Shown here piece after piece: positions 7,401-49,324 of a stretch of 64,000 nucleotides of DNA (position 1 is its first letter; every line of letters begins with the position of its first letter). The notes beneath the pieces are model-generated. The model had not been told where the DNA came from, made no database searches, and saw nothing but the letters and a program-made list of their open reading frames with translations. The position numbers and the translations under genes are program-made. This DNA is from Scyliorhinus canicula. Lineage: Eukaryota. The DNA is taken from assembly GCF_902713615.1 (NCBI RefSeq), contig NC_052154.1, forward strand, positions 66,240,621 to 66,304,620. Direction: 5' to 3'.

Positions 7401-7756
7401 ACTGGTATCCTGCCACCATCCCTGTACTGGTATCCTGCGACCATCCCTGTACTGGTATCCTGCCACCATCCCTGTACTGGTATCCCGCGACCATCCCTGT
7501 ACTGGTATCCTGCCACCATCCCTGTACTGGTATCCCGCGACCATCCCTGTACTGGTATCCTGCGAATATCCCTGTACTGGTATCCTGCCACCATCCCTGT
7601 ACTGGTATCCTGCGGCCATCACTGTACTGGTATCCTGCCACCATCCCTGTACTGGTATCCTGCCACCATCCCTGTACTGGTATCCTGCGACCATCCCTGT
7701 ACTGGTATCCTGCGGCCATCCCTGTACTGGTATCCTGCCACCATCACTGTCCTGGT
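4488..7756 (+). repeat. 25-bp satellite/minisatellite array, left part (~130 units)
   Basis: Tandem CCATCCCTGTACTGGTATCCTGCCA with recurrent variants. Ends mid-unit (..CTGGT) exactly at the Gypsy LTR. Confidence 0.98.
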
Positions 7757-10700
7757 TGTGGTGAATGTGATTCACACTATATATAGTTGCCAATATCACT
7801 CCATGTATATATGTTCGTTATCTACCCGTTGTAAGATCAATGCTGTATATAGTTGCCAATATAACTCCGTGTATATATGTTCACTATCCACCATTGTAAG
7901 TGCAGTTGCACTATCCGACCACCAGGGGGAGTCGCTCTGGGAGTACGCGAGAGTTTGTACTGGGCTCCTCCCTTGGCTCCGCCCAGGACTCCTCCCCCTG
8001 GGACCGATGTATAAACACCAGTGCCTTAGAGCCAGCCTGCCAGTTCATCTGAAGTTCAACGACGAATAGGCTGGCTCTGTTGTAAGTGTATTAAAGCCTC
8101 TGTTCAAATCCAACTACACATGTTCGCTGAATTGATGGTTCCATCAATTTAATACACTTAAGAAGCTGCCGAAGTAAAGCATGGAATCCGCTCTAAAACC
8201 AGAACGTCTAGAACTCGATCCGCAGGATGCAGAGGCGAAAGAAACCATCTGTCACTGGCTGAAATGTTTTAAGGCCTACCTGGCCCAGATCAGCACCGCT
8301 GAAACTACGGAGGAACAAAAGCTCAGCCTACTGCACGAAAGGGTAAGCCACAGAATTTCGACACAACTAAATCCAGCCGGTTCCTACACCACAGCGCTGG
8401 CGATTTTGGACAAAATGTATATTAGGCCCATGAACAAGGTCTTTGCCCGCCATGTGTTCACGACTCGCCAACAACGGTCTACCGAAACTTTAGCTGAATT
8501 TGCACGCGAGTTGAACAATCTCTCAAATGACTGCAATTACCAGGCTGTAACCGCGGCCGAACATAGGGAGCTTGCTGTGCGGGACGTTTTTGTAGCGGGC
8601 CTTCGATCTAACTATGTACGCCAGAGACTATTAGAAAATGGGGCCCAGGGCTTAGAGACTACCGTAGAGGCTGCTATCACAATGGAAGTTTCCTTCCGCA
8701 GCCTCAACTCGTTTCCCGCGGACCCCGCTAACCCCGCATGGGCCCCCGACCTGAGGATCCCTCAAGCCTGTGCCGCAAGGCCCCCCAGCTATCGCGCGGC
8801 CACAGCCGGTCGCCCTACTGTCCCAGTCAACTACTCAAGCTATCCAGCTGCTCCAGATAATTACTCAGCTCCCCCAGCCAGCTACTCAGCTTGCCAAACC
8901 AGTTATTCAACTGCTCCAGCCTGCCACTATTCAGCTCCCCAAACCAGTTATTCAACTGCTCCAGCCTGCCACTATTCAGCTCCCCAAACCAGTTATTCAA
9001 CTGCTCCAGCCTGCCACTTCTGTGGACAAAGCCAGCACCCGCGGCAGCACTGCTCAGCCCGATCCGCGACCTGCAGCAGCTGCGGTAAGAAAGGCCACTA
9101 TGCCAGAGTGTGCCACTTCTGTGGACAAAGCCAGCACCCGCGGCCTGCAGCAGCTGCGGGAAGAAATGCCACGATGCTAGAGTGTGCCCCGGCAGAAGGG
9201 TCCCAGGCCTCAACACCCCAACAGCCCAAAAACATCGCCCCCAGCACCAGCAGGCCCGCGGGGCCCGAAACGCTGCGGCCTATGCTCAGGCTCCGCACCC
9301 TCCTGCCACGTGCGATCCATGGGGGCCGCCATCTTGGCAAACCTCCACCATGCGGCCGGCCACGTGCGATTCATGGGGGCCGCCATCTTGGACGCCATCT
9401 TCATCACCACCCTCCACGTGCGATCCACGGGCCCAAGCTGCATCCCCAGTCTCAAACAGCTCATCGGAGGAGTACGACCTCCCCGGGCAGTCACCACATG
9501 GCCCGCAACTCAGCGCAGTGTTCCTGCATCAAGCTCGCCAGAACGCAGCGGCATCTACTCGACAGGACGCCCGATCGGAAGAATTCGACTTTTCCGGGCA
9601 CCCACCACGCGGCCCGCAACTCAACGCGGTCACCCTCGACCAATCTCGCCCCAAGCATCTGAGAAATTCGATGACGGAGGTCCAGATCAACGGGTACAAC
9701 ACGTTGTGCCTCTTCGACTCCGGGAGCACAGAGAACTTCATACACCCAGAGCTGGTAAGACGCTGTTCCCTCCCTATTTATCCCGTCAACCAAACTATCG
9801 CCCTCACTTCGGGCTCCCATTCCATCCAAATCCAAGGCCGCACTACAGCAACGCTAACGATTCGAGGCGCTAGCTATTCCAAATTTAAACTGTATGTCTT
9901 GCCCGACCTCTGCGCGCCACTCCTCTTAGGCTTGGATTTCCAATGTAATCTCAAGAGTCTCACCCTCAGCTTCGGCGGGCCCCTGCCCCCACTCACTATC
10001 TGCAGCCTCGCCACGCTGTGCATCGCCCCCCCCCCCCTCTTCGCCAACCTCACCCCGGATTGCAAACCGGTAGCCACCCACAGCAGGCGGTACAGCCTGC
10101 AGGATAGGGTATTTATCAGAACGGAGGTCCGAAGGCTGCTCAGTGAGGGGATCATAGAGGCCAGTAACAGTCCCTGGAGAGCTCAGGTGGTGGTCGTCAA
10201 GACCGGGGAAAAATTCCGCATGGTCATCGATTATAGCCAGACCATCGATCGCTTTACGCTCCTAGACGCGTATCCCCTCCCCAGAACTGCAGACATGGTA
10301 AACCAGATCGCCCAATATCGGGTATTTTCCACGGTTGATCTGAAGTCTGCATACCACCAGCTCCCAATCCGCCCGGAGGACCGCCACTACACGGCCTTCG
10401 AGGCCGATGGCCGCCTCTTCCATTTCCTCCGGGTTCCCTTCAGCGTCACTAACGGGGTTTCGGTGTTCCAACGAGCAATGGACTGAATGGTAGACCAGTA
10501 CGGGCTGCGGGCCACGTTTCCGTATCTGGATAATGTTACCATCTGCGGCCATGACCAGCAGGACCACGACGCCAACCTCCACCGTTTTCTCCAGACGGCC
10601 CAAAAATTAAACCTTACATATAACAAGGAGAAATGCGTGTTCCGCACAAACAGACTAGCCATCCTCGGCTACGTCGTGGAGAACGGAGTCCTGGGCCCAG

Positions 10701-12905
10701 ACCCGGACCGCATGCTCTTAGAACTCCCCCTCCCCCATGGCCCCAAGCCCTCAAACGGTGCTTGAGGCTCTTTGCGTACTACGCCCAGTGGGTCCCCCAA
10801 TATGCGGAAAAAGCCCGCCCACTCTTCAAGGCCACACTATTTCCCCTGTCTGCTGAGGCGCGCCAGGCCTCCAGCTGCATCAGGGATGACATCGCCAAAG
10901 CAGCCATGCGGGCGGTGGATGAAGCCACTCCCTTTCAGGTTGAGAGCGACGCCTCAGAGGTAGCGCTAGCAGCCACTTTAAACCAAGCAGGGCGGCCCGT
11001 TGCATTTTTCTCCCGTACCCTATCCGCTTCAGAACTCCGACACTCCTCAGTCGAGAAGGAAGCACAAGCCATCATGGAGGCTATCTGACACTGGAGGCAC
11101 TACCTCACAGGTAGGAGGTTCACCCTCATTACCAACCAACGGTCGGTCACCTTCATGTTTGACAACTCGCAAAGGGGCAAAATTAAAAATGACAAAAGTC
11201 TTCGGTGGAGGATTGAACTCTCCACCTACAATTACGATATCAAATATCGACCAGGGAAGCTCAACGAGCCCTCGGATACCCTATCCCGCGGGACATGCGC
11301 CAGCGCGCAAATCAGCCGTCTAAAAGCCATCCACGATGACCCCTGCCACCCAGGGGTCACCCGGCTCGTCCACTACATCAGAGCCCGAAACTTGCCTTTC
11401 TCCAACGAGGAGGTAAAAGCGGTCACCAGGGACTGCCCGATCTGTGCGGAGTGCAAACCGCACTTCTATAGACCAGACAGGGCCCACCTGGTCAAGGCTT
11501 CTAGGCCCTTTGAACGCCTTGCGATCGATTTCAAAGGGCCACTCCCCTCCACTAACAAAAACATTTACTTCCTTAACATTATTGACGAGTTCTCACGATT
11601 CCCCTTCGCCCTCCCATGCCCCGATATGACCTCCCACACAGTGATTAGGGCCCTGCATAGTGTCTTCACCCTGTTCGGTTTCCCCAGCTACGTGCACAGC
11701 GACCGGGGTGCGTCCTTTATGAGTGACGAGCTGCGTCAGTACCTGCTCGACAAGGGCATCGCCTCGAGCAGGACTACCAGCTACAACCCCAGGGGGAATG
11801 GACAGGTGGAGAGGGAGAAAGCGACGGTCTGGAAGACCGTCCTACTGACCCTCAGGTCCAGAAAGCTCCAAGTTTCCCAATGGCAGGAAGTCCTCCCTGA
11901 CGCACTCCATGCAATTAGATCCCTCCTGTGTACAGCTACCAACCAAACCCCCCACGAGCGGCTCTTCATTTTTTCCAGGGGCACTACCACAGGGGTCTCA
12001 CTTCCGGCGTGGCTGAGGACCCAGGCCTGGTTCTCCTAAGGAAGCACGTCAGGGCGCACAAAACCGACCCCCTTGTTGAAAAGGTGCGCCTGCTTCATTC
12101 CAACCCACAGTACGCATCTGTTGAGTTCCCGGACGGTCGCCAGGACACAGTATCCCTCCGGGACCTGGCACCCGCTGGATCCAGCCCCCCATCTACCCCC
12201 ACCGAGGAACTCCTTTCCCCCTTCCCTATGCGGCCGCCCCCTTGCGCCCCCGATTCTGCGAGCTCACCCCACCAGTCCCGAGCGCCAGCACCAGCCCGCC
12301 CCCCGTGCCCCCAGTCTCCATTCGACCAGGAGGTGTATGAGGCTTGGACAAGACTCGCCCCGGACCCAGCAACCGTACCCCAGACCTCGACGCCCGCCCA
12401 GCCACCGCAAGAGGCTGCAACCCCGGTGCTCCGCAGATCAAAACGGACAATTTGTCCACCGGACAGACTGACTCTTTGAGCCATCACCCCCGCCGGACTT
12501 GATTTTTTTAACAGGGGGTGAATGTGGTGAATGTGATTCACACTATATATAGTTGCCAATATCACTCCATGTGTGTTCGTTATCTACCCATTGTAAGATC
12601 AATGCTGTATATAGTTTCCAATATAACTCCGTGTATATATGTTCACTATCCACCATTGTAAGTGCAGTTGCACTATCCGACCACCAGGGGGAGTCGCTCT
12701 GGGAGTACGTGAGAGTTTGTACTGGGCTCCTCCCTTGGCTCTGCCCAGGACTCCTCCCCTGGGACCGATGTATAAAGATCAGTGCCTTTGAGCCAGCCTG
12801 CAGTTATTTGGATTTCAACGAAGAATAGGCTGGCTCTGTTGTAAGTGTATTAAAGCCTCTGTTCAGATCCAACTACACGTGTTCGCTAAATTGATGGTTC
12901 CATCA
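7757..12905 (+). mobile_element. Ty3/Gypsy LTR retrotransposon, family A copy 1 (full length, defective)
   Basis: TG..CA LTRs at 7757-8146 and 12523-12905. Gag from ATG 8181 with zinc knuckle (CSSCGKKGHYARVC), protease LFDSGS, RT (YPLP..DLKSAYHQ..YLDN), RNase H (VESDAS), integrase (HPG..CPIC, IDFKGP, SDRG). PPT ACAGGGGGTGAA. Internal stops and frameshifts. Confidence 0.97.
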
Positions 12906-13292
12906 CCTCAATTAATGCATTTTTCTCTTGCCTAGTTTGCCCATTGATGGTCTGGTGATGATCATCAATGATCGGTAGAGCACCTTTCCTCCTGTACTCT
13001 AGATTGCTATCTCCGGGTACACTGGACAGAATATCCTATTCCCAAAAAGATCCTCTGAGACCCTCAGATTATAGTGTCTGGTGCCAAGCTCACCCATTCC
13101 ACCTCTGGTTTTCCAAGATAGATTGCTGTGAAACTCAACTTGAATACCCAAGCAAAGGGACCCAGAAATACTAAGGAAGGCGGCCAGTTGCTCTAGCGTT
13201 TTAAAACAAGTCTGATACATTGTTTAGACCAGTGCGAAGCTGGGGAAAAGATCACCCAAAAAACGATGGCTAGAGGACAACTGAGTGTACTT

Positions 13293-14705: not shown

Positions 14706-14751
14706 TTTTTTTAAATTTGATGTACAATATTTATCCATCTTCTATCTATCA

Positions 14752-19805: not shown

Positions 19806-21147
19806 GGGCACGATTCTCCAGCCGCGATGCGCTCATGTGAGAGCACAACACGACTGGACAATCCCGGGAGAGGCCTGCAGCGAGCTTCCCAACAGGCTCC
19901 GTGCCTCGCGAGATTCACCGGAGTCTCGCGAGATGTCGGAGTCGGAACCCCGCCCTAAATGGTCAGGACTGAATGACGCTCGTAGAAGTAGGACGTAAAC
20001 CTATTTACTAACTAACTGCATAGGGTCCACCAGCCTCCTTCGATTCTGCAGCCGGTGCCAATCAGTGATGGTCCACACAAACATGGACCAGGTGGAACAG
20101 TATCCGGGGGATTTCCCAGGCCATTGGAGATCCCTTGGTGGTCAGGGTAAGTGCAGGGTGGCTCCCTGGCCCTAGCCTGGAACATGAGCACCTTGGCATT
20201 GCCCAGTTGGCACCTTGGCACTGCTATCCTCGCACTGCCAAGGTGCCCAGATGGCACTGCCACGCTGGCAGGGGCACTGCTTGGGTTCCAGGGTGGCAGT
20301 GCAAGGGTGCCCAAGTGCCAGGATGATACTGCCAAGGGTCAGGGGTTGAGGGGGGGCCATGGCATGAAACAAGGGTGGAGGGAAGGTTTGAAGGATGGGG
20401 AAGTGCAGAGCAGGTAGGTAGGGGCCTCCAGGAGGTTGGGGGGGGGGGGGGGGTGATGGGTGGGGGTGCTAGAAGGAAGGGAGTACTGTAAGGGGGCTTG
20501 GGGAGGCCTGAAGAGGGGGCACCCCTAGGGACCCATAGCGGGGTGTCTTCACTTGAGAATAGGTGTGGGGTAATGTCCATCTGTGTGTGTGTGGGGGGGT
20601 GGTGATATTGCCCTTAAGTGGGGGACCCACAAGCTCACTTAGAGATTGGGTCACCCTTTCAAAATGACGGCCCGATCTCTGAGTTCAGTTCCCCAGTGCT
20701 AAAAAAAATTTGAAGTGTGGGCTAAACCGGTGAGAAACTCCCAGGGCCCAAATAAATCTCTTAGTGTCATTGAATAGCGGTGGGGAAGTTGCTGGCAGAG
20801 CTGGCATGAAACTCTCTGAAAGACCTGCTGTCATGTTCTATTGACTGGCTGAAGTGAATGGTGAACTGCAGAACATGTAGTTTAAAATAATTTATTATAG
20901 AACAACTGCGTGATAAGATAACTGGGATAAATTAAATAATGAACAACTAACACTAACAACTATTGAGAAACTACATCTATCTCCCAGCATGACCTACTCC
21001 CAACTCCCAGATCACAGGGTCACATGATGGGTTCACAATGCCACCTAGTGGTCAGAGGCCATGCATAACATTATATACAAACTTGCTTATGTATATCATC
21101 ACACCCGCCACAAATTAACTTAGAAATTCTTTGGGAGAATCACGCTC
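19806..21147. mobile_element. GC-rich Harbinger-like MITE
   Basis: TIRs GGGCACGATTCTCC / GGAGAATCACGCTC with ATT on both flanks. Internal GGCA(C)TGCC repeats. Confidence 0.65.
20829..21102 (-). mobile_element. Probable solo LTR nested in a Harbinger-like MITE
   Basis: TGTCATG..CATCACA termini, flanks CCTGC/CCCGC, minus-strand AATAAA ~20890, AT-rich block interrupting a GC-rich element. Confidence 0.6.
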
Positions 21148-23889
21148 ATTATTTGAAATTCACAGAACAACGCAAAGATGGCAGTAACTTTGGTTGAAAG
21201 CAATCTATCTACAATTGTGCAGAGTGATTCAGAGCATTTAGCTCACGTGGAGCACAAATACAGCATGGACCAATTGGGCTGAATGGCCTATTGTTGCTCT
21301 AGTTTCTATGTAATGCTAAGTAATTCTATGCTGTTTTATTCAATATTATATTTGAGTGACTGATTTCTGGAGAATGAATTAAGGTACCCTTATTAATATG
21401 GGAGCCTTGTGGCATTTTCAGACTGAATTTGATGATTATGCCCATGTTTCAGTGAAAAATGTAAACCTTGAATACTGTATGTTGTTAATATTCATTTATT
21501 TTCATTTTACCCTTTGTTACAGTCCAGGATATGGAAAATGATAGGAGAGAAAATCCTCCAGGTTGCAGGGAGATAATGGTTCTGCTACCTGGGGAAGAAG
21601 CATGCTGCTGTATGGTTGTGTTGGAAGAGTGGCCTTGGTATGTAATGGCAATGGCACAGTGATGAAAGGTTGTGGGAGCAGCGGATAGAGTATTTCCTTG
21701 ATTTGCGGATAAAGGGCGTATTGGCGTGTGACAAGAATGGAGAGTTGCTCGGTCCATAATCTTTGGAGAGGTGGATCCTTCAGTGTGGAAGTAGTGGAGA
21801 GGCAGGAGAGGGGTGGTGGGGATAGGCTCTAAGATACATCATGACTGCTTCAGAGTATGGTGGTGGTGGGATGGGCTTTCAAGTTGTGGTAGTTCTTGGA
21901 CAATAGCACTGAATTGTGAAATCTAGGATTATCAGCAAGGAAACCCTGAGTGAAGAGGTTACTTGTCAGACTAATGGAGTTAAAAGATCCAGGAGAACTA
22001 GAAAGGACCCTACAAGATTTGAGAGCATTGAGACAGGGATAGCAGAGCCTGGAAGGTGTTGGGGGAGAACTTTGCCAGCACTAAAATGGATGCTGCTGTG
22101 TGTTAGTTTTGGGAGAGAAACCTTGGTGAAAGATTGTGAGAGCAGTGGATAGAGGAGTTCCTTGATTTCGAGGTAAAGGAAGGCAGCTTCTTAATAATGA
22201 GAACAATGGGAAGGAGGTGTGATGCTGCTAATGAAAAAGCATGAAGTTAAGGGTTTTTACAGGGTGGATCAGCAATGGGAAGTGAAGAAAAAAATTACTT
22301 GGGTTTTTAATGTAAGTCACACAACATAGATCTCCATTTAACCGAGGCAAACATAGATCTACTGAACTCTGAACACCAATTTGGAATGAGCATGTAACAA
22401 ATGAAGATGCTTTATTCACAAAATATTGTTTGAATTATCCATGGTTCTCAGCAACAACTCTTTCTGTTTACCAAGAGTTGACCTCGATAATAGTAAACCC
22501 CATTTTTTTGTATTTTCCCCACCTTAACTTTAAATGGAAATGCCACACTCTGAGTGTGTGCAATGTCTATAGTTTCCCACCCTGTACCATTTGACTTTTC
22601 TCACTGGCGTTTACCCAGAAGTTCTGACTTTGTTTCAGTTCACTGATGCCAAAGCAGAATTGAAGAATGAGATTTATTTATTTCCCATCAGATACTATTT
22701 ACCTGACAATGATAATCCATTGTTAAATTGAGCTCACATTTACCAGAGTCAAGGGAATAATGTTCACCCCATTTTAGCTTCTACTTTTTACTTTGTGCTG
22801 ATCCACCAAAGGAGGACGAGGGAGTTAAAACTTGGCGATACTGGCATCACTCAGGGCAGCAGCCCATACCCAATCTCCAGCTTTACCCTGCATAGCACAA
22901 CATCCAGTGGAACGTCAACCCCGTGAGGAACATCCGACCTGAGACAAGGGCTATTTCAGACCCATGAACCTTTCGTACAACCAGAACGGACAATCATCTC
23001 CTAGCTCTCAGTCAATGTCTAAAAGCACAAAAGCCCAAAAGCCCATCAGAACTGCTTGCTCTTGAGAAGCCCTGACTGTGGGTGGCGGATGAGGGGGGTG
23101 CAGTCAGTGGGTGCCAACCTGCCAACAACCTGCCTGAGAAAGAGACAGTACAGTAAAAACAAAGCAACACAAAATATTTGTTGCCCTGCATTTTAACTAC
23201 TATCACCTACATATAAATTGCTTAAATAGTTACCTTTCTCTTTATATAAATGTTTTCACACATTTAGGATAGACTGGAAGTTCTGCTTAATTTGGTGTCT
23301 AGTTTTGAATTTTGGATAGCGAAGTCCACAGCAGCAGTCAAATGTTGCATATCGAGATGAGTAAAAATTGTACTGAAAGTAAACGGTATCAGGCTGGTGA
23401 TTGCTGCTGACATCAAGAGCATGGTACATTTGCTATATTAAAGGGAAATCAATACATAAGGTAAAACAGATTTTAGCAAATGTACCAGACCCTCAACATT
23501 TTGTATAGTAGGTTTTAAAATGACTTTAAATGATAGCAGCGAAGTACATTTCAGGTCCTCTCTAATTAAGTGCCTTCTTACTTATTCGTATTGAGCGGGA
23601 AAAATAATTGCCTCAGTTATAAATGTCAGAGCAAACAAACTCCCCTTTTCAGTCCTAAATGGATTTCTGATCATTTTCAATTTAAACACTTTGGTTTAGC
23701 TGAAAGCTCCAGGAAACAGATTTACATTCACCTTTCCAACCTTTGTTCCACTGACTTCAAAAATGTGTTTGTCTTCAATTTCGATGCACTGCATTCATTC
23801 TTCCATTTGTCATCTCAGCTACAAATAACTGCTGTTACTTGGGTGGCAATAGTGAAGTACCCATATCAATTACAATAACATGAAGCGAA

Positions 23890-24104: not shown

Positions 24105-24129
24105 AATAACATGAAGCTAATGCAGTGTA

Positions 24130-31590: not shown

Positions 31591-31634
31591 TGATATCAGC
31601 TAAATGATTGCTTTTGAAAGAAAGCTTGAGTGAG

Positions 31635-31712: not shown

Positions 31713-31956
31713 CAGGGCTCAAAACAGTAGCACTTCGCACCAAGCAGTGGTTGGACAAGAAAGTTTCCTTTCGTTTCTCACCAATACTTTTTGTTTTGGT
31801 AACTAAAGGTTATTTATTCGCAGTGGGTTTTAAATCGTATCTTAGCAAATGCATTTTATACCTATGAAAGAGAAATCATACCGTGTACCAATACTTGTGG
31901 CTAATAATTTGAATGTTTGCTCCGGCTGAACTTTCTTCCTTTGCCTCCTAGGTATC

Positions 31957-32116
31957 ATGTTTAGAGTTGTGTTGTTGTGCTGGAGCCTGCAGATGGTTCA
32001 GGTCGTTCTCACCAGGACTGCAGAGAATGAGCTGGACTTGACCTTGATGCCGAATGACGCTCCATACAGCGACCTTGCTCTGTTGAGCAGGGTCCAGACC
32101 CTCCTGCCTGCCGCAG
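31957..32116 (+). CDS. agrp: Agouti-related peptide, coding exon 1 (signal peptide and pro-region)
   Basis: Pyrimidine tract and AG acceptor at 31950-31951, ATG at 31957, hydrophobic N-terminus MFRVVLLCWSLQMVQVVLT, donor CAG|GTGTGT at 32117. 160 nt, phase 1, joins in frame to the next exon. Confidence 0.85.
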
Positions 32117-32913
32117 GTGTGTGTTTGAACTGTTTGTGTCTCACTCTGCGCTTGTCTGTGTTAGTCCAGGAGTCAGGCAAGTAAATGCCCGCCGCTTCAC
32201 CCACAATTGGCAGTCAAGTGGCACTTTCAGGAGCTTAGAACAAATGGGTCACAAAATCGACTTAAAAATGATTGTCCTTATCGAGAGGGAGTGAGTAATT
32301 TCTGAGTTTGTAAAGCAAACGTCCTCACTACTTGAGTAGCTGGGCAGTTGCAAAATTCTGTTCTAAGTTGCAACATTTACCTCAGATCTCTGAGCTTGCA
32401 TTCTGATTTTCGCATTGAATCAATTATTTTGTCTCATATTTACTTCAAATGTATCAACAAACAAGTAACCTTTAATTTATTAAGAGTGGGCGGACTTCTT
32501 CTGTTGCTCACAGGAGGATATTGTTTTTATAATAGTTTTGTCCCTCTTCCCTCCATCGACTGTTCATTTCCCGCTCTGCTTTTGTCAAGTTTCTTTTTGA
32601 CTTGTCTCCGTCAGTTTTCTCCTGTTTCTCTCTCAGTTCCTGTATTGTGCTTTCCCCGCCTCTCCTCCGCCTAACCCCCACTCGATAGATATCCTGCTGG
32701 GAAGAGACGGTGCATAAAGCACGATTCTTTCAACTATCCCTCATTGTTTAAAATTGCAAAATATGCCGTCCTGGTAGAGACAAGAATGCATGTTGATTTC
32801 GAAGAATCTTCATTTTTAGTAAGAATCAAATCAAAGCTGAGTGTTTCACTATCTGACCTTGACCAAGTAGCATCTTGCAAATTAATTTAACGTTATGTGA
32901 TTCTGTAATCCAG

Positions 32914-32999
32914 GTCCACTGTCCAGCCCCGCATTGGACGGAGCAGTGGGTTCAGTTCAGGAGGATCGTGTGTCAGAGAACATCATGCTGGAACCTCAG
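32914..32999 (+). CDS. agrp: Agouti-related peptide, coding exon 2 (acidic pro-region)
   Basis: CAG acceptor 32911-32913, 86-nt open exon (G)PLSSPALDGAVGSVQEDRVSENIMLEPQ, donor CAG|GTAGTT at 33000. Phase 1 in, phase 0 out, matching both neighbours. Too short for the ORF track. Confidence 0.8.
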
Positions 33000-33228
33000 G
33001 TAGTTGCAATTTTCACACAGCAACAACGCAAAGCAGGATGACTGTTGCTGTGTGATTAACGTAGTTCAATTTTTATTACAGATAAGTATAGACTCTTAAT
33101 AATAATTTTTCAAATGTTGTGCAGATCGGCCTATTTGTATGATTGAATGAGATTTTGTGAAATTCTTCTGTTACATTGACTTGTCAGCACAGGCTCAGTT
33201 AGCAGCACTCTCACCTGTGAGGCACAAG

Positions 33229-34602
33229 TGGACTAGATTCTCCGTTTTTGAGGCTATGTTCCCACGCCGGCGTGGGAACAGTGGCATTTTACGACATAAA
33301 AAGTGTAAAACAGCGACCGATCCTCCGATTGTCTGGAGGCTAGCATCAAGGCAGCGTAGAGCACCCAGCTCTACCTGCTGATACGGCCCAGAGAATTGCC
33401 AGGTCTGTGCCTGCGCAAGCACACAGTGGTGGCCTGCAGCGACACGGCAGCGGCCGCTCGGGGACTCGGCCTGCAAAATAGTGCCCCTCTTTGGCTGGCT
33501 CGTGCGCCCTGGACCACCCCCCAACAGTGCCCCCGGCCCCTGGCAAAGTCCCCCCTGCTCGCGGATCAGCCTCCCCGGCTGCTACACCGAGTTCCCAATG
33601 GATGAGACCACACGCGACCTGCGTTGTCGGGAACTTGGCCGGTCAGGGGCGGACCATCGGGAGGTGAGCCTCAGGCAATGTCCTGAGGCCATCAATATGG
33701 CGCATGGCGTACTTTCCGAGTACGCTGCTTTGGAGGGGGCGGAGCATCGTGAACGAGGCGCTGCACCCGATCCGCTCATGAACGGGGTTTCTCCGGCTGA
33801 TCACCGAACACGATTTTGGCGTCAGTGACCGGAGAATCCCGCCTAAGGTTTTGGGTTTGCATCCCAGCTCCGTACTGAGGGAGAGATGAGGTTTTAGACT
33901 GAGGCTCCACCTGCGTGGATGTACAATAAAAATCTCATTGCACTATTTGGAAGGAGCTGGAAAGTTATCCCAGAATTAATATCCTCGGTCAACGTCAGAA
34001 AAGCAGATCATCTGGGCTCTGAAGAAGTTATATGGACTCAAAACGTTGAGTGGAATTCTCCCAAGAAATTACTTTGCGGCGTGAAAACCGGTGAAAATCT
34101 CGGCCACAATACCACCGTGATTCCCCTCGGAATTCTCCCACATGTAACTTGGGGAGGCTCCCGTTGGGAAACAGATGTGCAGGACATAAAGACACCACCA
34201 GACCACCTCCTCGGAGATAGGATGCCCCAATGCCTCAAATTCCAGACGTACCCATAGCCCCTCTCCTCCTACTTACCAGCAGAACATCCTCCCCCCACTC
34301 TCAGGCATCAGTCCCCACCCCCATCGCTAGTACCAACCACCCCCCCCCCCCAAGTGACCAACACCACGAAGGCCCCTCCTTTAAGGTCCTCCCCTCCATG
34401 TTCCACTTCATGCCCCCACCTCTCAATACCCCTCCTTTCTAGGCCGTGACCCCTCTCAGGTCCCACCCCCTTGGCAATGCCCCATGGTACCCTGGCAGTG
34501 CCTCTGAGTCCGCACTTTCGGAGGCTGCTGACACCGGAGTGGTTCGCGCCGGTTTTCCCACCGGCATGGGGACTTAGTCCCCAGAAAGGAGAATCCCGCC
34601 CA
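33229..34602. mobile_element. Two GC-rich Harbinger-like MITEs in agrp intron
   Basis: ~33229-33844 (GATTCTCC..GGAGAATCCCGCC) and ~34048-34602 (GAATTCTCC..GGAGAATCCCGCCC) share the same TIR family. Confidence 0.6.
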
Positions 34603-36007
34603 GTGTCTCTAGGCAAATATTTTAGCAAAGATCCTGGAGTGACTGGGATTCACGTGGTAACCAACATGCGAGATAAGTGTAAATTGAATGTCCTGCAGTC
34701 ACATATTCAGGAGCTGAATGTTTTTAAATAAATAGTGCAGGATTTATAAAGGAACCCAAGGAAGTAGTACAAGGAATAAGAGCGACAAGGAGCCCACACT
34801 TCAAATTTAGATTTTCCTAATCAGTGATATATTACAACGGTGGGGCAAATTAATTCCTGGAACATGGGCTTCACGGGCAAGGCTGGTGTTTTATTGCTGA
34901 CCCATCATTGGCCCTGAAAAGGTGGTGATGAGCCTTCTTCTTGAACCACACCATTCCGTGTGTGAAGGTGAACCCTCAGGCCTGTTAGGGAGGCAGCTCC
35001 AGATTTTTCACCCGGTGATGATGAAGGAATGGTGTTACACGTCCAAATTGAGATGGTGTGTGGAGGCCGCAGGCTTTTAGGTGGTGGAGGCCGCAGGCTT
35101 TTTAATACAGTACAGGATAAGAGATTAATCCATGAGTTAGGGAAGCATAAAATAAAACGGGTGTCATTTATTTAATCCAAAAACAAAATGCTGCAAATGC
35201 CAGAAATCTGATATGAGGAAGGATCGTCATCACCCCAAAACATTAATTCTGTTTCTCTCCACAGATGCTGCCTGACCTGCTGAGTATTTCCAGCATTTTC
35301 TGATATTTATTTAGTCACTGGGAAAAAAAACGCCCTGGCCCCAAAATACAATTTGAGAGAATGGATATTATTTTTTAAATCCCAGCATTCAATGTATTTT
35401 TTTCCCAACTTTGTATTAAAAATCCTTAAAGTTATAGGCAGGGAGCCAGTTGACTAGTTGGCTCAAGCGTGGTGCAAAATAGCAGCAACAGAGTGAGTTC
35501 AATTCCCCGTACTGGCTGAGGTAATTTTTTGGGCCCCTCTCCTGGCCTTGCCCCATTGTGATATCATGGTATAAATGATGATTATCAGCCCTCAAACAAT
35601 GAGGACATTAAATGAAGAGAGCCAGAGAAAAGCATTGGCAAGGTGAATTCTGGGATAAGTAGTTACAGTGCTAGCATTCAGAAGCAGGGAATTGTGTGAA
35701 CTGAACAAATATTTGAAAGAAAATCTATAGAGAGAGATAAATGTTTGGAAAAGCTGCCCTGGGAGTCTATCAAGGCTGCTTAACATCACTCATTTAAGTG
35801 GGTTCAGACAGGCATTTGATGAGAATTTAGAGATATAAGTAGGGAACTGTGTGTTTTATTACTGGCTGGCGAGATGCAACAAAATGATCTTGTCAGATCC
35901 TGTGTGTCTGTCTATTGTTCGTGTTTCACTATTAAATGCAATTGTTCATTAACTGCTGCAATATGAAGAAATGGTGTGCTTTTCTGATCTTTAAATTTGC
36001 TTTGCAG

Positions 36008-36196
36008 GTAATATCCAATGCTCTGGAGATAGAGAGATCAGAGCGTTCGCCCAGGAGATGTGTCCGACACTTGGAATCCTGTTTTGGTCATACTCTGCCT
36101 TGCTGTGACCCATGTGCCATTTGCTATTGCAGGTTTTTTAATGCCATTTGTTACTGCAGGAAGATCGGCAACAGCTGTCACCAGGGCAAGAGTTAA
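36008..36196 (+). CDS. agrp: Agouti-related peptide, last coding exon (cystine-knot agouti domain)
   Basis: TTTGCAG acceptor, then VISNALEIERSERSPRRCVRHLESCFGHTLPCCDPCAICYCRFFNAICYCRKIGNSCHQGKS-stop. Ten Cys, C-x6-C-x6-CC spacing, RFF melanocortin-receptor loop and RSPRR processing region, very close to the mammalian AgRP C-terminus. The three exons total 435 nt = 144 aa + stop. Confidence 0.96.
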   Translation, partial: VISNALEIERSERSPRRCVRHLESCFGHTLPCCDPCAICYCRFFNAICYCRKIGNSCHQGKS

Positions 36197-36297
36197 TTTT
36201 GTACTTATGTTGTGTGCTTGAATATGTTTCTGTAGGGAGCATATGCACAAATTTATGTTATTTGTTTTTTGTGTCTTGCTTGTAATGTAAGAGTTAA

Positions 36298-36303
36298 AAT
36301 AAA
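36298..36303 (+). terminator. Putative agrp polyadenylation signal
   Basis: AATAAA ~100 nt after the stop codon, with GT-rich sequence further downstream. Confidence 0.6.
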
Positions 36304-36499: not shown

Positions 36500-37612
36500 T
36501 GCAGGATATCAGTACAGGGATGGTGGCAGGATACCAGTACAGGGATGGCCGCAGGATACCAGTACAGGGATGGTGGCAGGATATCAGTACAGGGATATTC
36601 GCAGGATACCAGTACAGGGATGGTGGCAGGATCCCAGTACAGGGATGGTGGCAGGATCCCAGTACAGGGATGGTGGCAGGATACCAGTACAGGGATGGTC
36701 GCAGGATACCAGTACAGGGATATTCGCAGGATACCAGTACAGGGATGGCCGCAGGATACCAGTACAGGGATGGTCACAGGATCCCAGTACAGGGATGGTG
36801 GCAGGATACCAGTACAGGGATGGTGGCAGGATACCAGTACAGGGATGGCCGCGGGATACCAGTACAGGGATGGTGGCAGGATACCAGTACAGGGATGGTG
36901 GCAGGATACCAGTACAGGGATGGTGGCAGGATACCAGTACAGGGATGGTGGCAGGATCCCAGTACAGGGATGGTGGCAGGATACCAGTACAGGGATGGTG
37001 GCAGGATACCAGTACAGGGATGGCCGCAGGATACCAGTACAGGGATGGCCGCAGGATACCAGTACAGGGATGGCCGCAGGATACCAGTACAGGGATGGCC
37101 GCAGGATCCCAGTACAGGGATGGCCGCAGGATCCCAGTACAGGGATGGTGGAAGGATACCAGTACAGGGATGGTGGCAGGATACCAGTACAGGGATGGTG
37201 GCAGGATACCAGTACAGGGATGGCCGCAGGATACCAGTACAGGGATGGCCGCAGGATACCAGTACAGGGATGGTGGCAGGATCCCAGTACAGGGATGGTG
37301 GCAGGATACCAGTACAGGGATGGTGGCAGGATACCAGAACAGGGATGGTGGCAGGATACCAGTACAGGGATGGTGGCAGGATACCAGTACAGGGATGGTC
37401 ACAGGATACCAGTACAGGGATGGCCGCAGGATACCAGTACAGGGATGGCCGCAGGATACCAGTACAGGGATGGTGGCAGGATCCCAGTACAGGGATGGTG
37501 GCAGGATACCAGTACAGGGATGGTGGCAGGATACCAGAACAGGGATGGTGGCAGGATACCAGTACAGGGATGGTGGCAGGATACCAGTACAGGGATGGTC
37601 GCAGGATACCAG
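36500..37612 (-). repeat. Same 25-bp satellite in reverse orientation (~44 units)
   Basis: Tandem GGATACCAGTACAGGGATGGTGGCA, the reverse complement of the left unit. Ends mid-unit (..ACCAG) at the LTR at 37613. Confidence 0.98.
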
Positions 37613-40600
37613 TGATGGAACCATCAATTCAGCGAACAAGTGTAGTTGGATCTGAACAGAGGCTTTAATACACTTACAACAGAGCCAGCCTATTCGTCGT
37701 TGAACTTCAGATGAACTGGCAGGCTGGCTCTAAGGCACTGATCTTTATACATCGGTCCCAGGGGGAGGAGTCCTGGGCAGAGCCAAGGGAGGAGCCCAGT
37801 ACAAACTCTCGCGTACTCCCAGAGCGACTCCCCCTGGTGGTCGGATAGTGCAACTGCACTTACAATGGTGGATAGTGAACATATATGCACGGAGTTATAT
37901 TGGAAACTATATACAGCATTGATCTTACAACGGGTAGATAACGAACATATATACATGGAGTGATATTGGCAACTATATATAGTGTGAATCACATTCACCA
38001 CATTCACACCCTGTTAAAAAAATCAAGTCCGGCGAGGGTGAAGGCTCAAAGAGTCAGTCTGTCCTGTGGACGAATTGACCGTTTTGATCTGCGGAGCACC
38101 GGGGTTGCAGCCTCTTGCGGTGGCTGGGCGGGCGTCGGGGTCTGGGGTACGGTTGCCGGCTCTGGGGCGAGTCTTGTCCGAGCCTCATACACCTCCTGGT
38201 CGAATGGAGATTTGGGGCGCGGGGGGCGGGCTGGTGCTGGCGCTCGGGACTGGTGGGGTGAGCTCGCAGAATCGGGGGCGCAAGGGGGCGCCCGCATAGG
38301 GAACGGGGAAAGGAGTTCCTCGGTGGGGGTAGATGGGGGGCTGGATCCAGCGGGTGCCAGGTCCCGGAGGGATACTGTGTCCTGGCGACCGTCCGGGAAC
38401 TCAACAAATGCGTACTGTGGGTTGGAATGAAGCAGGCGCACCTTTTCAACAATGGGGTCGGTCTTGTGCACCCTGACGTGCTTCCTTAGGAGAAGCGGGC
38501 CTGGCGTCCTCAGCCACGCCGGATGTGAGACCCCTGTGGTAGTGATCCTGGAAAAAATGAAGAGCAGCTCGTGGGGGATTTGGTTGGTAGCTGTACACAG
38601 GAGGGATCTAATTGCGTGGAGTGCGTCAGGGAGGACTTCCTGCCATTAGGAAACTTGGAGCTTCCTGGACCTGAGGGTCAGTAGGACGGTCTTCCAGACC
38701 GTCGCGTTCTCCCTCTCCACCTGTCCGTTCCCCCTGGGGTTGTAACTGGTAGCCCTGCTCGAGGCGATGCCCTTGTCGAGCAGGTACTGACGCAGCTCGT
38801 CACTCATAAAGGACGCACCCCGGTCGCTGTGCACGTAGCTGGGGAAACCGAACAGGGTGAAGACACTATGCAGGGCCCTAATGGCTGTGTGGGAGGTCAT
38901 ATCGAGGCATGGGATGGCGACAGGGAATCGGGAGAACTCGTCAATAATGTTAAGGAAGTAAATGTTTTTGTTAGTGGAGGAGAGTGGCCCTTTGAAATCG
39001 ATCGCAAGGCGTTCAAAGGGCCTAGAAGCCTTGACCAGGTGGGCCCCGTCTGGTCTATAGAAGTGCGGTTTACACTCCGCACAGATCGGGCTGGCCCTGG
39101 TGACCGCTTTTATCTCCTCGTTGGAGAAAGGCAGGTTTCGGGCTCTGATGTAGTGGGCGAGCCGGGTGACCCCTGGGTGGCAGAGGTCATCGTGGATGGC
39201 TTTTAGGCGGCTGATTTGCGCGCTGGCGCATGTCCCGCGGGATAGGGTATCCGAGGGCTCGTTGAGCTTCCCCGGTCGATATTTGATATCGTAATTGTAG
39301 GTGGAGAGTTCAATCCTCCACCGAAGAATTTTGTCATTTTTAATTTTGCCCCTTTGCGAGTTGTCGAACATGAAGGCGACCGACCGTTGGTCGGTAAAGA
39401 GGGTGAACCTCCTACCTGCGAGGTAGTGCCTCCAGTGTCGGATAGCCTCCACGATGGCTTGTGCTTCCTTCTCGACTGAGGAGTGTCGGAGTTCTGAAGC
39501 GGATAGGGTACGGGAGAAAAATGCAACGGGTGCCCTGCTTGGTTTAAAGTGGCTGCTAGCGCTACCTCTGAGGCGTCGCTCTCAACCTGAAAGGGAGTGG
39601 CTTCATCTATCGCCCGCATGGCTGCTTTGGCGATGTCGTCCCTGATGCAGCTGAAGGCCTGGCGCGCCTCAGCAGACAGGGGAAATAGTGTGGCCTTGAA
39701 GAGTGGGCGGGCTTTGTCCGCATATTGGGGGACCCACTGGGCGTAGTACGAAAAGTGCCCCAAGCACCGTTTGAGGGCCTTGGGGCCATGGGGGAGGGGG
39801 AGTTCTAAGAGGGGGCGCATGCGGTCCGGGTCTGGGCCCAGGACTCCGTTCTCCACGACGTAGCCGAGGATGGCTAGTCTGTTTGTGCGGAACACGCATT
39901 TCTCCTTGTTATATGTTAGGTTTAATTTTTGGGCCGTCTGGAGAAAACGGTAGAGGTTGGCGTCGTGGTCCTGCTGGTCATGGCCGCAGATGGTAACATT
40001 ATCCAGATACGGAAACATGGCCCGCAGCCCGTACTGGTCTACCATTCGGTCCATTGCTCGTTGGAACACCGAAACCCCGTTAGTGACGCCGAAGGGAACC
40101 CGGCCATCGGCCTCGAACGCCGTGTAGTGGCGGTCCTCCGGGCGGATTGGGAGCTGGTGGTATGCAGACTTCAGATCCACCGTGGAAAATACCCTATATT
40201 GGGCAATCTGGTTTACCATGTCTGCAATTCTGGGGAGGGGATATGCGTCTAGGAGCGTAAAGCGATTGATGGTCTGGCTATAATCGACGACCATGCGGAA
40301 TTTCCCCCCGGTCTTGACGACCACCACCTGAGCTCTCCAGGGACTGTTACTGGCCTCTATGATCCCCTCACTGAGCAGCCTTCGGACCTCCGTTCTGATA
40401 AATACCCTATCCTGCTGGCTGTACCGCCTGCTGTGGGTGGCTACCGGTTTGCAATCCGGGGTGAGGTTGGCGAAGAGAGGGGGGGGGGGGGCGATGCGCA
40501 GTGTGGCGAGGCTGCAGATAGTGAGTGGGGGCAGGGGCCCGCCGAAGCTGAGGGTGAGACTCTTGAGATTACATTGGAAATCCAAGCCTAAGAGGAGTGG

Positions 40601-42658
40601 CGCGCAGAGGTCGGGCAAGACATACAGTTTAAATTTGGAATAGCTAGCGCCTCGAATCGTTAGCGTTGCTGTAGTGCGGCCTTGGATTTGGGTGGAATGG
40701 GAGCCCAAAGCGAGGGCGATAGTTTGGTTGACGGGATAAATAGGGAGGGAACAGCGTCTTAACAGCTCTGGGTGTATGAAGCTCTCTGTGCTCCCGGAGT
40801 CGAAGAGGCACAACGTGTTGTACCCATTGATCTGGACCTCCGTCATCGAATTTCTCAGATGCTTGGGGCGCGATTGGTCGAGGGTGACCGCGTTGAGTTG
40901 CGGGCCGCGTGGTGGGTGCCCGGGGGAGTCGAATTCTTCCGATCGGGCGTCCTGTCGAGTAGATGCCGCTGCATTCTGGCGAGCTTGATGCAGGAACACT
41001 GCGCTGAGTTGCGGGCCATGTGGTGACTGCCTGGGGAGGTCGTACTCCTCCGATGAGCTGTTTGAGTCTGGGGATGCAGCTAGGGCCCGTGGATTGCACG
41101 TGGAGGGTGGTGATGAAGATGGCATCCAAGATGGCGGCCCCCATGAATCGCACGTGGCCGGCTGCATGGTGGAGGTTTGCCAAGATGGCGGCCCCCATGG
41201 ATCGCACGTGGCAGGAGGGGGCGGAGCCTGAGCATAGGCCGCAGCGTTTCGGGCCCCGCGGGCCTGCTGGTGCTGGGGGCGATGTTTTTGGGCTGTTGGG
41301 GTGTTGAGGGCTGGGACCCTTCTGCCGAGGCACACTCTAGCATCGTGGCCTTTCTTCCCGCAGCTGCTGCAGGTCGCGGATCGGGCTGAGCAGCGCTGCC
41401 GCGGGTGCTGGCTTTGTACACAGAAGTGGCAGGTTGGAGCAGTTGAGTAACTGGTTTGGGGAGCTGAATAGTGGCAGGCTGGAGCAGTTGAATAACTGGT
41501 TTGGGGAGCTGAATAGTGGCAGGCTGGAGCAGTTGAATAACTGGTTTGGCGAGCTGAGTAGCTGGCTGGGGGAGCTGAGTAATTATCTGGAGCAGCTGGA
41601 TAGCTTGAGTAGTTGACTGGGACAGTAGGGCGACCGGCTGTGGCCGCACGTTAGCTGGGGGGCCTTGCGGCACAGGCTTGAGGGGTCCTCAGGTCGGGGG
41701 CCCATGCGGGGTTAGCAGGGTCAGCGGGAAACGAGTTGAGGCTGTGGAAGGAAACTTCCATTGTGATAGCAGCCTCTACGGTAGTCTCTAAGCCCTGGGC
41801 CCCATTTTCTAATAGTCTCTGGCGTACATAGTAAGATTGAAGGCCCGCTACAAAAACGTCCCGCACAGCAAGCTCCCTATGTTCGACCGTGGTTACAGCC
41901 TGGTAATTGCAGTCATTTGAGAGATTGTTCAACTCGCGTGCAAATTCAGCTGATGTTTCAGTAGACCGTTGTCGGCGGGTCACGAACACATGGCGGGCAA
42001 AGACCTCATTCATGGGCCTAATATACATTTTGTCCAAAATCGCCAGCGCTGCGGTGTAGGAACCGGCTGGATTTAGTTGTGTGCAGTAGGCTGAGCTTTT
42101 GTTCCTCCGTAGTTTCAGCGGTGCTGATCTCGGCCAGGTAGGCCTTAAAACATTTCAGCCAGTGGCAGAAGGTTTCTTTCGCCTCTGCATCCTGCGGATC
42201 GAGTTCTAGACGTCCTGGTTTTAGAGCGGATTCCATGCTTTACTTCGGCAGCTTCTTAAGTGTATTAAATTGATGGAACCATCAATTCAGCGAACACGTG
42301 TAGTTGGATCTGAACAGAGGCTTTAATACACTTACAACAGAGCCAGCCTATTCGTCGTTGAACTCCAGATAACTGCAGGCTGGCTCTAAGGCACTGATCT
42401 TTATACATCGGTCCCAGGGGGAGGAGTCCTGGGCGGAGCCAAGGGAGGAGCCCAGTACAAACTCTCGCGTACTCCCAGAGCGACTCCCCCTGGTGGTCGG
42501 ATAGTGCAACTGCACTTACGATGGTGGATAGTGAACATATATATACGGAGTTATATTGGCAACTATATACAGCATTGATCTTACAACGGGTAGATAACGA
42601 ACATATATACATGGAGTGATATTGGCAACTATATATAGTGTCAATCACATTCACCACA
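37613..42658 (-). mobile_element. Ty3/Gypsy LTR retrotransposon, family A copy 2 (full length, defective, inverted relative to copy 1)
   Basis: LTRs at 42271-42658 (5') and 37613-38002 (3'). Gag ATG at 42236, 710-aa PR-RT-RH ORF 39203-41335, integrase ORF 38646-39452, all nearly identical to copy 1. Confidence 0.97.
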
Positions 42659-45600
42659 TGAGGGTCAGGCAGAAACGCACGTGGCAACTAGTTACCTGAC
42701 AGAGCAATCAGCTAAAGTCCAAGGATGGGTTTGGGGGGAGGGGGGGCTCGAGATTTCTCTTTTGTGGGGCTGCGGGCAAGCGGGAAAGAGAAAGAAGCTC
42801 TGACGGGTCCAAACCGGGAGACTGATGGATAGTTAATGAATGGGCACACTTTCAGCCTGAAGCTGCATTAAGAACTGGACATAGAGTCCATGTTGGAGGA
42901 AGGGAAGCCATTCCAATGAAAACATTCATATTGAGATTGGATTATGGGAAAGAATCACACGAACTTTACCTTTCATCTTCAATTTGACACTGATGTGTCA
43001 CCCAGTCACTGTGTTGACAATCTGGGGGGGGGGGGGGAAATACTGTTCTAGCGCTAGTTATTTATTTTGTTTTCTCTTATTTAACCACTTTCTGTGCTCC
43101 AGCCAAGCACTTTACATTGAATAGTCACAACATGTACTGGTGTCATGATGGTGCCAGCTCTCGGCAACAGCAGCTCAGCTAGTCTCACTCCCCCACCCTT
43201 CCCTGTGGTCCTGCAATTTTTTTCCCCTTCAGAAAATTGTATAATTGCCTTTTGAAAGCCAGATGGAATCTGCGTCCGCTACTCTCTCAGCTAGAGCATT
43301 CTAAATCCTAACCACCTCGCTGCGTAAAAAAGTTCCCCCACGTTGTTGGTGGGTCGTTTGCCAATCGCCTGAAATCGGGGGCGGGATTCTCTCAGCCCGG
43401 GACCACAGAGTGGAGAATCGGTGCCACTGGCGCTGGCGTGGTTGGCACGGTGCCGGTGGGGAGCCGCCCTACGCTGATCCTGAGGCCGTGTTGATGCCGT
43501 CGCCGACAACACTTAGCCTCAGGATCACATAATCCCACCCCAGCATCCTCCAGTTCCAAACCAACCTGCCTGCCAACCAAAACAGCTTCACTCCATCTAG
43601 ATCTCTCATGGTTTTGAGTACCTTTATCAAATCTACTCTCAACTTTCCCTTCTCTGAGGAGAATAATGACGCTTCTCCAACTTACCCTTGTAACTGAAGT
43701 CTCTCATCCTTGGAACCGTTCTTGCCAATCACTTCTGCACCCTGTCTGCAGCCTGACCATCCTTCCTCAAGTGCAGTGCACAGAATTGCAGATACTACTC
43801 TAGTTGAGGCTGATTAGGTATTATTATAAAGGTTCACTGGAACTTCCTTGCTTTTCTACACTACGGGCAAGATTGTCAGGCCCCGCCCACTGCCAGGATC
43901 GTCTGGTCCCGCCAAAGGTCAACGGACTTTTGGCTGTCCCGCACAGAGAGGCTGGAAAATCCCAGCCTCTGCCCTAGTTTACAAAGGCTAGGACACACTG
44001 GGCGGGATTTACTGAGCAACCCACCAGATGTTTTGCGACAGTGGGAGGCAGCCGGCCATTGGCTGGTGGTGGGATCTTCTGGTTGCCCGTTGAATGCACA
44101 CCTCTCCACCGGGAAACCCGCGGCCGGGACAGGTTGTCGGCAGGATCAGAAATCCCCGCCGGTATAAACGGAAGTTCTGGCCAATATGTCTATTTAACCA
44201 CTTTGGCAACTTGTCCTTCCACCTTCACTCTTTGTGCGTGTATACACCTAGCTGGAGTCAAAATAATTTGTTTTCTTCAAGGGTTGTTCTATGAGAAAAA
44301 TACTGCCTAACTTGATTTTCTTGTGGGTTACCTCTGGATTTTCAGGGGCTACTTTCTGATTTTCAGGGATTCCTTATTAATTGATGCACTATCAATTACG
44401 ACGAGATGAGAGTAGAGAGTACTTGAGGCTTTATTAAGCAGAGATGTGTTGCCTCCTGCAGCTGCTACCGAAATGGCAGCAGCTCGGTGAGCACTCACAT
44501 TTATACTCCACCTACTGGACGGAGCCAGCAGGCAGGGATCTACCCCCATACCTGTAGTACAGGAGCCTTACCGTATTACCTCTATATACATATTATACAA
44601 ACAGTGGTGACTACCACATTCACCCCCAGTTAAAAAAAGAGCCCAGCACGGGTGGTGGAAAAACTATTTACATGGTATGTGAGAAATTTTTACAGTGTAC
44701 AGTTTTGGTGAAAGTTTACAAATTTAGCCGGTCGGGTGCCTTGATCCTCTGCTGCGAGCGACGCAGTTCCGGTGGTGATGCAGACGCCGGCTTGGTCGGC
44801 TGTGACTCCAGGAGCGTGTAGTCCTCATCTTCATCCCCGGGTGGGACCAAGGGGAGGACGGATCGTCCTGGAGCGGGGACTGTGGTGAGGTGCGCTGGGG
44901 GGAGGATGGGTGACGCCGGGGTAATTGGGGGGGGGGGGGAAACCAGCAGGTGCCAGGTCCCTGAGGGAGACTGTGTCCTGGCGGCCGTCGGGGTACGCCC
45001 CGTACTGTGGGTTCGCATGCAGCAGCTGTACCCTTTCGACCAACGAGTACGCCTTGTGGATCCGCATGTGCTTGTGGAGGAGGATGGGTCCTGGAACTGC
45101 CAGCCACGTTGGGAGCGAAACCCCACAGGTGGACTTCCTAGGGAAGGCAAGGAGACGTTCATGGTGGGTTCCATTAATCGCAGTGCAAAGTAGCGATCGG
45201 ATGGAGTGGAGGGCGTCGGGGAGGACCTCCTGCCAGCGGGAGGCCGGGAGATTTTTAGGCCGTAGGGCCAGCAGGACGGCCTTCCAGACCGTCCTGTTCT
45301 TCCTCACCACCTGCCCGTTTCCCCGGGGGTTGTAGCTGGTCGTCCTGCTCCAGACAATGCCCCTGCTGAGCAGGAACTGATGCAGCTCATCACTCATAAA
45401 GGAGGATCCCCAGTCCCTGTGGACGTAAGCGGGGAACCCGAACAGGGTGAAGATGCTATTGAGGGCTTTGATGACTGTTGCAGACGTCATATCGGGGTAT
45501 GAGATAGCGAAGAGGAATTTGGAGTATTCGTCAACCACATTCAGGAAGTACGTGTTTCGGTCGGAGGAGGGGAGGGGCCCTTTGAAGTCCATGCTGAGGC

Positions 45601-49300: not shown

Positions 49301-49324
49301 GTGAGTGAGTCCCGGCCTTGGGGG

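Follow-up and report, generated by a model that had tools for sequence, protein, structure and literature searches.

The question raised by a 64,000-nucleotide stretch of the catshark Scyliorhinus canicula (contig NC_052154.1, positions 66,240,621 to 66,304,620 of the forward strand; hereafter the window, numbered from its first letter) is how the gene agrp came to lie as it does between two retrotransposons. The gene is on the plus strand at 20068-36303, and the first exon of atp6v0d1 follows on the same strand. On both sides of agrp stands a copy of one Gypsy long terminal repeat (LTR) retrotransposon family, here called family A, and the two copies have opposite orientations. Neither copy is flanked by a matching target-site duplication (TSD), while each half of a duplication has its partner at the other copy. 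With a probability of roughly 0.78, the arrangement is the product of an inversion in the S. canicula lineage, made when two opposed Gypsy copies of independent insertion underwent a single non-allelic homologous crossover.

The two copies were delimited by self-BLAST, Pfam domains and open reading frames (ORFs), together with an alignment of the LTRs. Copy 1 occupies 7757-12905 on the plus strand, with LTRs at 7757-8146 and 12523-12905, and copy 2 occupies 37613-42658 on the minus strand, where 37613-38002 is the 3′ LTR and 42271-42658 the 5′ LTR; both are regarded as recombinant. The LTRs of both copies are 383-390 bp long, start with TG and end with CA. The element ends were taken from an alignment of all four LTRs without reference to the flanks. 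Copy 1 is preceded by CTGGT (7752-7756), which is also the end of a satellite array on its left, and is followed by CCTCA (12906-12910). Read on its own strand, copy 2 has CCTCA as its 5′ flank (TGAGG on the plus strand, 42659-42663) and CTGGT as its 3′ flank (ACCAG on the plus strand, 37608-37612). The 5-bp duplications are thus exchanged reciprocally, with CTGGT/CCTCA around copy 1 and CCTCA/CTGGT around copy 2, as an earlier note on this DNA had claimed; re-reading of the sequence showed that all its coordinates hold to the base. Two reciprocal matches of 5 out of 5 have a chance probability of approximately (1/1024)^2, about one in a million. The exchanged duplications bound the inverted block, which comprises the 24,707 bp between the elements (12906-37612) and contains agrp as a whole.

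A satellite with a 25-bp unit adjoins the CTGGT side of both Gypsy copies. Tandem Repeats Finder places its left part at 4488-7756 on the plus strand (130.8 copies) and its right part, inverted on the minus strand, at 36501-37613 (44.5 copies, ending in ACCAG). The right array begins 200 bp past the AATAAA poly(A) signal of agrp (36298-36303, plus strand). When the 100 nt at the end of the left array are joined to the reverse complement of the right array, 188 of 195 positions match a single phase with exactly 5 nt removed, and the other offsets between 0 and 10 give at most 130 matches. The claim that the satellite rejoins in register after flipping is therefore borne out, and it does so only when one copy of the 5-bp TSD is taken away. 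The composition of unit variants is alike in both arrays, without a distinguishable difference. A search for gradients along the units gave no positional signal, and distances across the junction equal those within the arrays; the absence of a gradient is consistent with one former array and adds no support for it.

Comparison with other sharks places the origin of this satellite at the 3′ end of agrp. In Carcharodon carcharias, Heterodontus francisci and Heptranchias the 25-nt unit is present as a single copy at the homologous site 3′ of agrp (great white shark, L004 ~18700; horn shark, L001 ~13940; sevengill shark, L002 ~16660), from which it follows that the array was born locally, before the split of the two Scyliorhinus species. 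This ties the array to the 3′ flank of agrp and makes plain that its left part, which today lies 29 kb from the 3′ end of the gene, was formerly contiguous with the right part. In the congener S. torazame, for which a HiFi/hifiasm assembly (L010) and an older, independent assembly (L011) were used, the 3′ flank of agrp passes directly into one uninterrupted 6.3-kb array of the 25-bp unit, without a Gypsy insertion, and the array start in the older assembly is identical in kind to that in the HiFi assembly. The array has 254 copies in S. torazame (L010 18788-25113) and about 175 in S. canicula. Similarity among units is 92-94% within species versus 86-87% between species, which indicates concerted evolution. 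No family-A element was found in 140 kb of S. torazame loci.

The gene order in relatives agrees with that obtained by flipping the block. On record CM105031.1 of S. torazame, agrp occupies 85.750-85.758 Mb of the minus strand, and atp6v0d1 begins at 85.891 Mb and is encoded by the plus strand, so that the comparison of orientations proposed in the earlier note finds the two genes on opposite strands, head-to-head. In the S. canicula assembly both genes are on the plus strand, agrp followed by atp6v0d1, in tandem and 13 kb apart, with the satellite and two Gypsy elements between them. The DNA upstream of agrp in S. torazame, Heptranchias, Heterodontus and Carcharodon aligns colinearly with the inverted block. 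Exon 1 of atp6v0d1 was not found within 10 kb downstream of agrp in any of the five other elasmobranchs examined. Further evidence comes from the left flank outside the inversion (1-4487, plus strand), whose homologue is located downstream of agrp, in reversed orientation, in great white and horn sharks. In Carcharodon the alignment to the window ends at 36522, in the first satellite unit, and approximately 6 kb further downstream the window sequence resumes in reverse from 4484 to 615, colinear over ~3.2 kb at 71-79% identity (L004 24770-27869). In Heterodontus the window sequence from 4371 to 2631 is present in reverse downstream of agrp (L001 18957-23093), including the unique stretch 4004-4371. 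For the left flank, the evidence relied upon is the colinear 3.2-kb match in Carcharodon and the unique stretch 4004-4484. Apparent left-flank matches in Heptranchias, and some in Heterodontus, were set aside, as parts of 970-1280, 1600-1750 and 2550-3650 are dispersed repeat.

Judged by these alignments, the order obtained after flipping 12906-37612 is the ancestral shark arrangement, found in four other assemblies, and the assembled S. canicula order is derived. The concern of the earlier note that the pre-inversion state would be the unexpected one is thereby resolved, as the flipped order is the shark order in the outgroups. The flip turned a head-to-head into a tandem order, which coincidentally resembles that of a bird and is thus tetrapod-like: in Rhea pennata ATP6V0D1 starts 2.2 kb after AGRP on the same strand, and the AGRP-ATP6V0D1 pair at human 16q22.1 is likewise in tandem. 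The catshark and tetrapod pairs share the same-strand succession of agrp and atp6v0d1. They differ in that the catshark order is secondarily derived and its gap is 13 kb, versus 2.2 kb in Rhea.

Among vertebrates agrp is not always oriented in the same way to its neighbours, and several flips may have occurred. A trypsin-like gene is arranged tail-to-tail with agrp in S. torazame and in Betta, and is located upstream and co-oriented in Mobula; a search for this neighbour in the 64-kb window did not find it. Approximately 5 kb downstream of agrp, a 1.6-kb piece is inverted between horn and sevengill shark (L001 18477-20110 versus L002 18785-17395). This piece matches dispersed repeats (window ~52-53.4 kb and 1474-1750) and is probably a transposable element (TE) that inserted in opposite orientations in the two sharks.

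The proposal that ectopic recombination between inverted Gypsy copies produced the block is supported by the exchanged TSDs, the opposite orientation of the copies, the split satellite that rejoins in register and the order in the outgroups. The first three of these are, taken together, the recognised marks of ectopic recombination between inverted TE copies. In the proposed sequence of events, the S. canicula lineage, once separated from S. torazame, would have acquired two copies of one family by independent integrations in opposite orientations. One copy (Ea) would have entered the 25-bp satellite just 3′ of agrp, giving rise to the duplication CTGGT, and the other (Eb) would have gone into unique DNA towards atp6v0d1, ~19 kb upstream of agrp, giving rise to CCTCA. 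A single non-allelic homologous crossover between the elements would then have inverted everything between the crossover points, including 24.7 kb of unique DNA that contains all of agrp as well as its upstream region. The crossover would lie somewhere inside the elements; an attempt to map it gave no position, as no other family-A copy is present in any locus examined and the LTR sites offer too few patterns, some of them in conflict.

The timing is set by the divergence of the LTRs. Unique DNA of S. canicula and S. torazame differs by 5.9-6.7%, and the LTR pairs as defined by the TSDs differ by 1.8% and 3.4%. Since the LTR divergence is below the species divergence, and since the insertion site is empty in S. 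torazame, both insertions, and hence the inversion, are dated after the species split.

A crossover between the elements should leave both copies chimeric, and the LTRs may contain traces of this. The closest pair among the four LTRs is formed by the 5′ LTR of copy 1 and the 3′ LTR of copy 2, both flanked by CTGGT, which differ by 7 substitutions and no indels (1.79%). Divergence between the LTRs within each copy as assembled is 4.70% and 2.84%, and between the copies the 5′-5′ and 3′-3′ distances are 2.84% and 3.66%. Three mutational events, clustered at LTR columns 305-316, bring the LTRs together in the pairs expected from the TSDs, and no site groups them as assembled.

Several points weigh against an inversion by crossover in the animal. 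Support for chimerism of both copies, as judged from the LTR sites, is real but thin. At LTR columns 119 and 244, of which 244 is a CpG site, the 5′ LTRs of both copies form one group and the 3′ LTRs another, a pattern that would need parallel mutation or gene conversion. At the second breakpoint (12906|42664) the support consists of the 5-bp match alone, and no outgroup locus reaches this position. The 10-kb flanks upstream of agrp extend to window position 17975 in Heptranchias and to ~23.2-23.5 kb in Heterodontus, Carcharodon and Pristis, and those of the two S. torazame assemblies to ~26.6-27.8 kb; from the other side, the 10-kb flank upstream of S. torazame atp6v0d1 ends at window position 48251 because of an 8.6-kb insertion there. 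The spacing of agrp and atp6v0d1 is 132 kb in S. torazame versus ~30 kb in the reconstructed S. canicula ancestor. Finally, the reference was built from noisy continuous long reads (CLR) with Falcon-unzip, and the ~94% identity of the 5-kb inverted repeats is near the discrimination limit of the assembler.

This last point leads to the explanation against which the inversion has mainly to be weighed. The earlier note had cautioned that an assembler flip would give the same pattern, and that caveat stands: a flip predicts the same sequence, and the outgroups do not tell the two apart. According to this explanation the animal would have the ancestral order, each element with its own perfect TSD, and Falcon-unzip would have crossed the block wrongly. 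The assembly is indeed CLR-based, the flipped order is that of every relative examined, so that no biological event would be needed, and the four short junctions have the same sequence in either order, with the consequence that short-read polishing would not expose a flip. The sScyCan1 assembly was built with Falcon-unzip from 63x PacBio CLR reads, scaffolded with 10X, Bionano and Hi-C data, polished and manually curated (bioRxiv 10.1101/2024.05.23.595469). Over 24,830 bp, window positions 39171-64000 are 100% identical to the atp6v0d1 locus of version sScyCan1.2 (L008; GCA_902713615.2, LR744038.1). No N occurs anywhere in the window, and the block and both elements are therefore within one contig, which leaves no room for a flip made during Hi-C or optical-map scaffolding. 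For a flip within the contig, the repeats of 5.1 kb would have to have misled reads that at 63x CLR coverage normally span them. The copies, moreover, are not identical: over 5.1 kb they differ by 162 substitutions and 139 gap columns, on average one difference in every 17 aligned columns, and share no identical run longer than 189 bp. The arrangement also persists in version 1.2, after Bionano, Hi-C and manual curation had been applied. An assembler flip is accordingly considered unlikely, and the event presumably took place in the animal rather than during assembly.

Two further explanations were considered. A real inversion could also have arisen by staggered breaks (the isochromatid model), which would have duplicated one single element at both ends of the block; the grouping of 5′ with 5′ and 3′ with 3′ LTRs at columns 119 and 244 is what this model predicts. 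As no flanking base is duplicated, its nicks would have had to coincide exactly with the two element termini, and at the distal break it would need a 5-bp stagger equal to the TSD length of the family. In addition, the model predicts the 5′-5′ LTRs to be the closest pair, and the pair observed to be closest is a 5′-3′ pair across the copies and not the 5′-5′ or 3′-3′ pair, so that this model is very improbable. The remaining explanation is coincidence, i.e. two insertions without recognisable TSDs next to two unrelated satellite arrays. Apart from the loss of TSDs by old elements nothing speaks for it, while it has to account for two reciprocal 5/5 matches, for a register obtained only at the 5-nt offset, for a satellite derived from sequence that is single-copy in the agrp 3′ flank of other sharks, and for the one array in S. 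torazame. These four observations exclude a chance origin of the pattern, and coincidence retains a probability close to nil. Recombination between the two Gypsy copies is thus the explanation that we retain.

From its 383-390-bp LTRs, its domain order and its 5-bp TSD, family A is, at the sequence level, a Ty3/Gypsy LTR retrotransposon; the TSD length of 5 bp is taken from the satellite register, which fits at 5 nt. In Pfam searches the ORFs of copy 2 contain gag-asp_proteas, RVT_1, RT_RNaseH and rve domains in the order protease (PR), reverse transcriptase (RT), RNaseH and integrase, and copy 1 has protease, reverse-transcriptase and integrase domains on more fragmented ORFs. The copies can be aligned over their full length in opposite orientation, with 3.2% substitutions and about 94% identity. 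In copy 1 a 493-aa gag-like ORF (8181-9662) is kept and pol is broken into several ORFs; copy 2 contains a 710-aa PR-RT-RNaseH ORF (39203-41335) and a 268-aa RNaseH-integrase ORF, and its gag is fragmented. Both copies are degenerate and their decay is complementary, copy 1 retaining the gag-like and copy 2 the PR-RT-RNaseH ORF. A 74-column gap between the copies is located ~100 bp 3′ of a 45-bp internal tandem repeat (8877-9018 in copy 1, 41425-41566 in copy 2). A perfect 9+2+9 palindrome (AATTGATGG TT CCATCAATT) is found at 8130-8149, with the equivalent site in copy 2 at about 42268-42287; it consists of the last 17 nt of the 5′ LTR and the first 3 nt of the internal region, the expected position of the primer-binding site. 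A third, older Gypsy-like remnant with integrase and protease domains lies between copy 2 and atp6v0d1 (44716-47438, minus strand) and has ~75% identity to family A in pol.

The identity of the gene within the block was established by tblastn with the RefSeq S. canicula AGRP protein XP_038662744.1, which places the coding exons at 20068-20148, 31951-32118, 32913-33008 and 36005-36193, all on the plus strand. Identity is 100% in three of the four exon matches and 94% in the third. The last exon contains the Pfam Agouti domain (PF05039, E = 3e-15), and the best matches are shark AGRPs. By virtue of this domain and of its match to the annotated AGRP, the gene is assigned as that for agouti-related peptide (AGRP). 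The RefSeq model of 172 aa includes an extra coding exon of 27 aa (20068-20148), 11.8 kb upstream of the next exon and 7.2 kb from the inversion breakpoint. The S. torazame model has 144 aa and is 28 aa shorter, which the absence of the 27-aa exon would fit. At least 7 kb of the sequence ahead of the first annotated exon travels with the gene, and because agrp keeps its 5′ region in this way, the inversion would be selectively neutral. In the same upstream part of the block are a Copia-type reverse-transcriptase fragment (27238-27720, plus strand; Pfam RVT_2, E = 8.5e-14) and 51-bp minisatellite arrays (24133-25784).

Outside the inversion, exon 1 of atp6v0d1 is located at 49171-49299 on the plus strand; it is 100% identical to residues 1-43 of the protein and matches the Pfam domain vATP-synt_AC39. 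The remainder of this 69-kb gene is beyond the window. Around exon 1 GC-rich short tandem repeats are present (48784-49679), and intron 1 contains a 29/58/87-bp minisatellite (50137-51396) in a region that aligns to the S. torazame locus too.

The closest known parallels are the Galileo inversions of Drosophila buzzatii, which were recognised by opposite orientation, exchanged TSDs and chimeric copies (PMC2775673). Common to both systems are opposed homologous TE copies at the breakpoints, exchanged TSDs and a non-inverted arrangement in other chromosomes or species. Terminal repeats that are closer between copies than within them mark the Galileo inversions; in the catshark the closest LTR pair is one across the copies, and chimerism is weakly resolved. 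Galileo belongs among the cut-and-paste transposons of the P superfamily, with a 7-bp TSD, whereas the catshark inversion involves an LTR retrotransposon whose TSD measures 5 bp, for which the alternative of aberrant transposition does not arise. The Galileo inversions span megabases and the catshark inversion 25-30 kb. The segmental duplications tied to recurrent human inversions are much longer and less diverged than the 5-kb, ~94% identical repeats of the catshark. Human inversions by non-allelic homologous recombination between L1 elements, human endogenous retroviruses (HERV) or segmental duplications resemble the catshark case in being balanced, flanked by inverted repeats and potentially able to recur, or 'toggle' (bioRxiv 10.1101/2021.12.20.472354). 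The mechanism itself is classical and a matter of textbooks, and the catshark agrp locus would add an instance of it. Our literature search found no paper that describes an inversion at the catshark agrp locus or that joins AGRP, ATP6V0D1 and synteny, and a paper on the evolution of the Agouti family makes no mention of ATP6V0D1 or of gene orientation.

The possibility of recurrence raises the question of whether the block might still be moving. The two satellite arrays, of 3.3 kb and 1.1 kb, now stand as inverted repeats at a distance of 29 kb from each other, with ~93% identity, and are a possible second substrate for further flips of copy 1 and the block. It may be imagined that the agrp block is a still-segregating inversion that flips repeatedly, with the Gypsy copies and satellite arrays as substrates and with effects of orientation on expression, at a vertebrate inversion hotspot. 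The idea of a hotspot is based on differences between a bird, a ray, a teleost and sharks in how agrp is oriented to its neighbours. We regard this extended scenario as doubtful, with the odds clearly against it. If it were true, agrp would lie beside the atp6v0d1 promoter in one orientation and, in the other, would face it from a position 25 kb more distant, and a polymorphism of orientation would lead to heritable expression differences of an appetite-regulating gene.

If the inversion by crossover between the two Gypsy copies is real, the locus would be a fully dissected retrotransposon-driven micro-inversion in a cartilaginous fish, with both breakpoints determined to the base, with a congener and sharks of two other orders showing the ancestral state, and with a relative date after the split from S. 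torazame. At this locus the reference may be mis-oriented, or individuals may differ in their order. Given a real inversion, the succession of agrp and atp6v0d1 in tandem in the catshark reference would be a secondary reversion and not conserved synteny, which is relevant when the ancestral gnathostome gene order is inferred, or conserved agrp regulatory DNA is sought, from the catshark genome.

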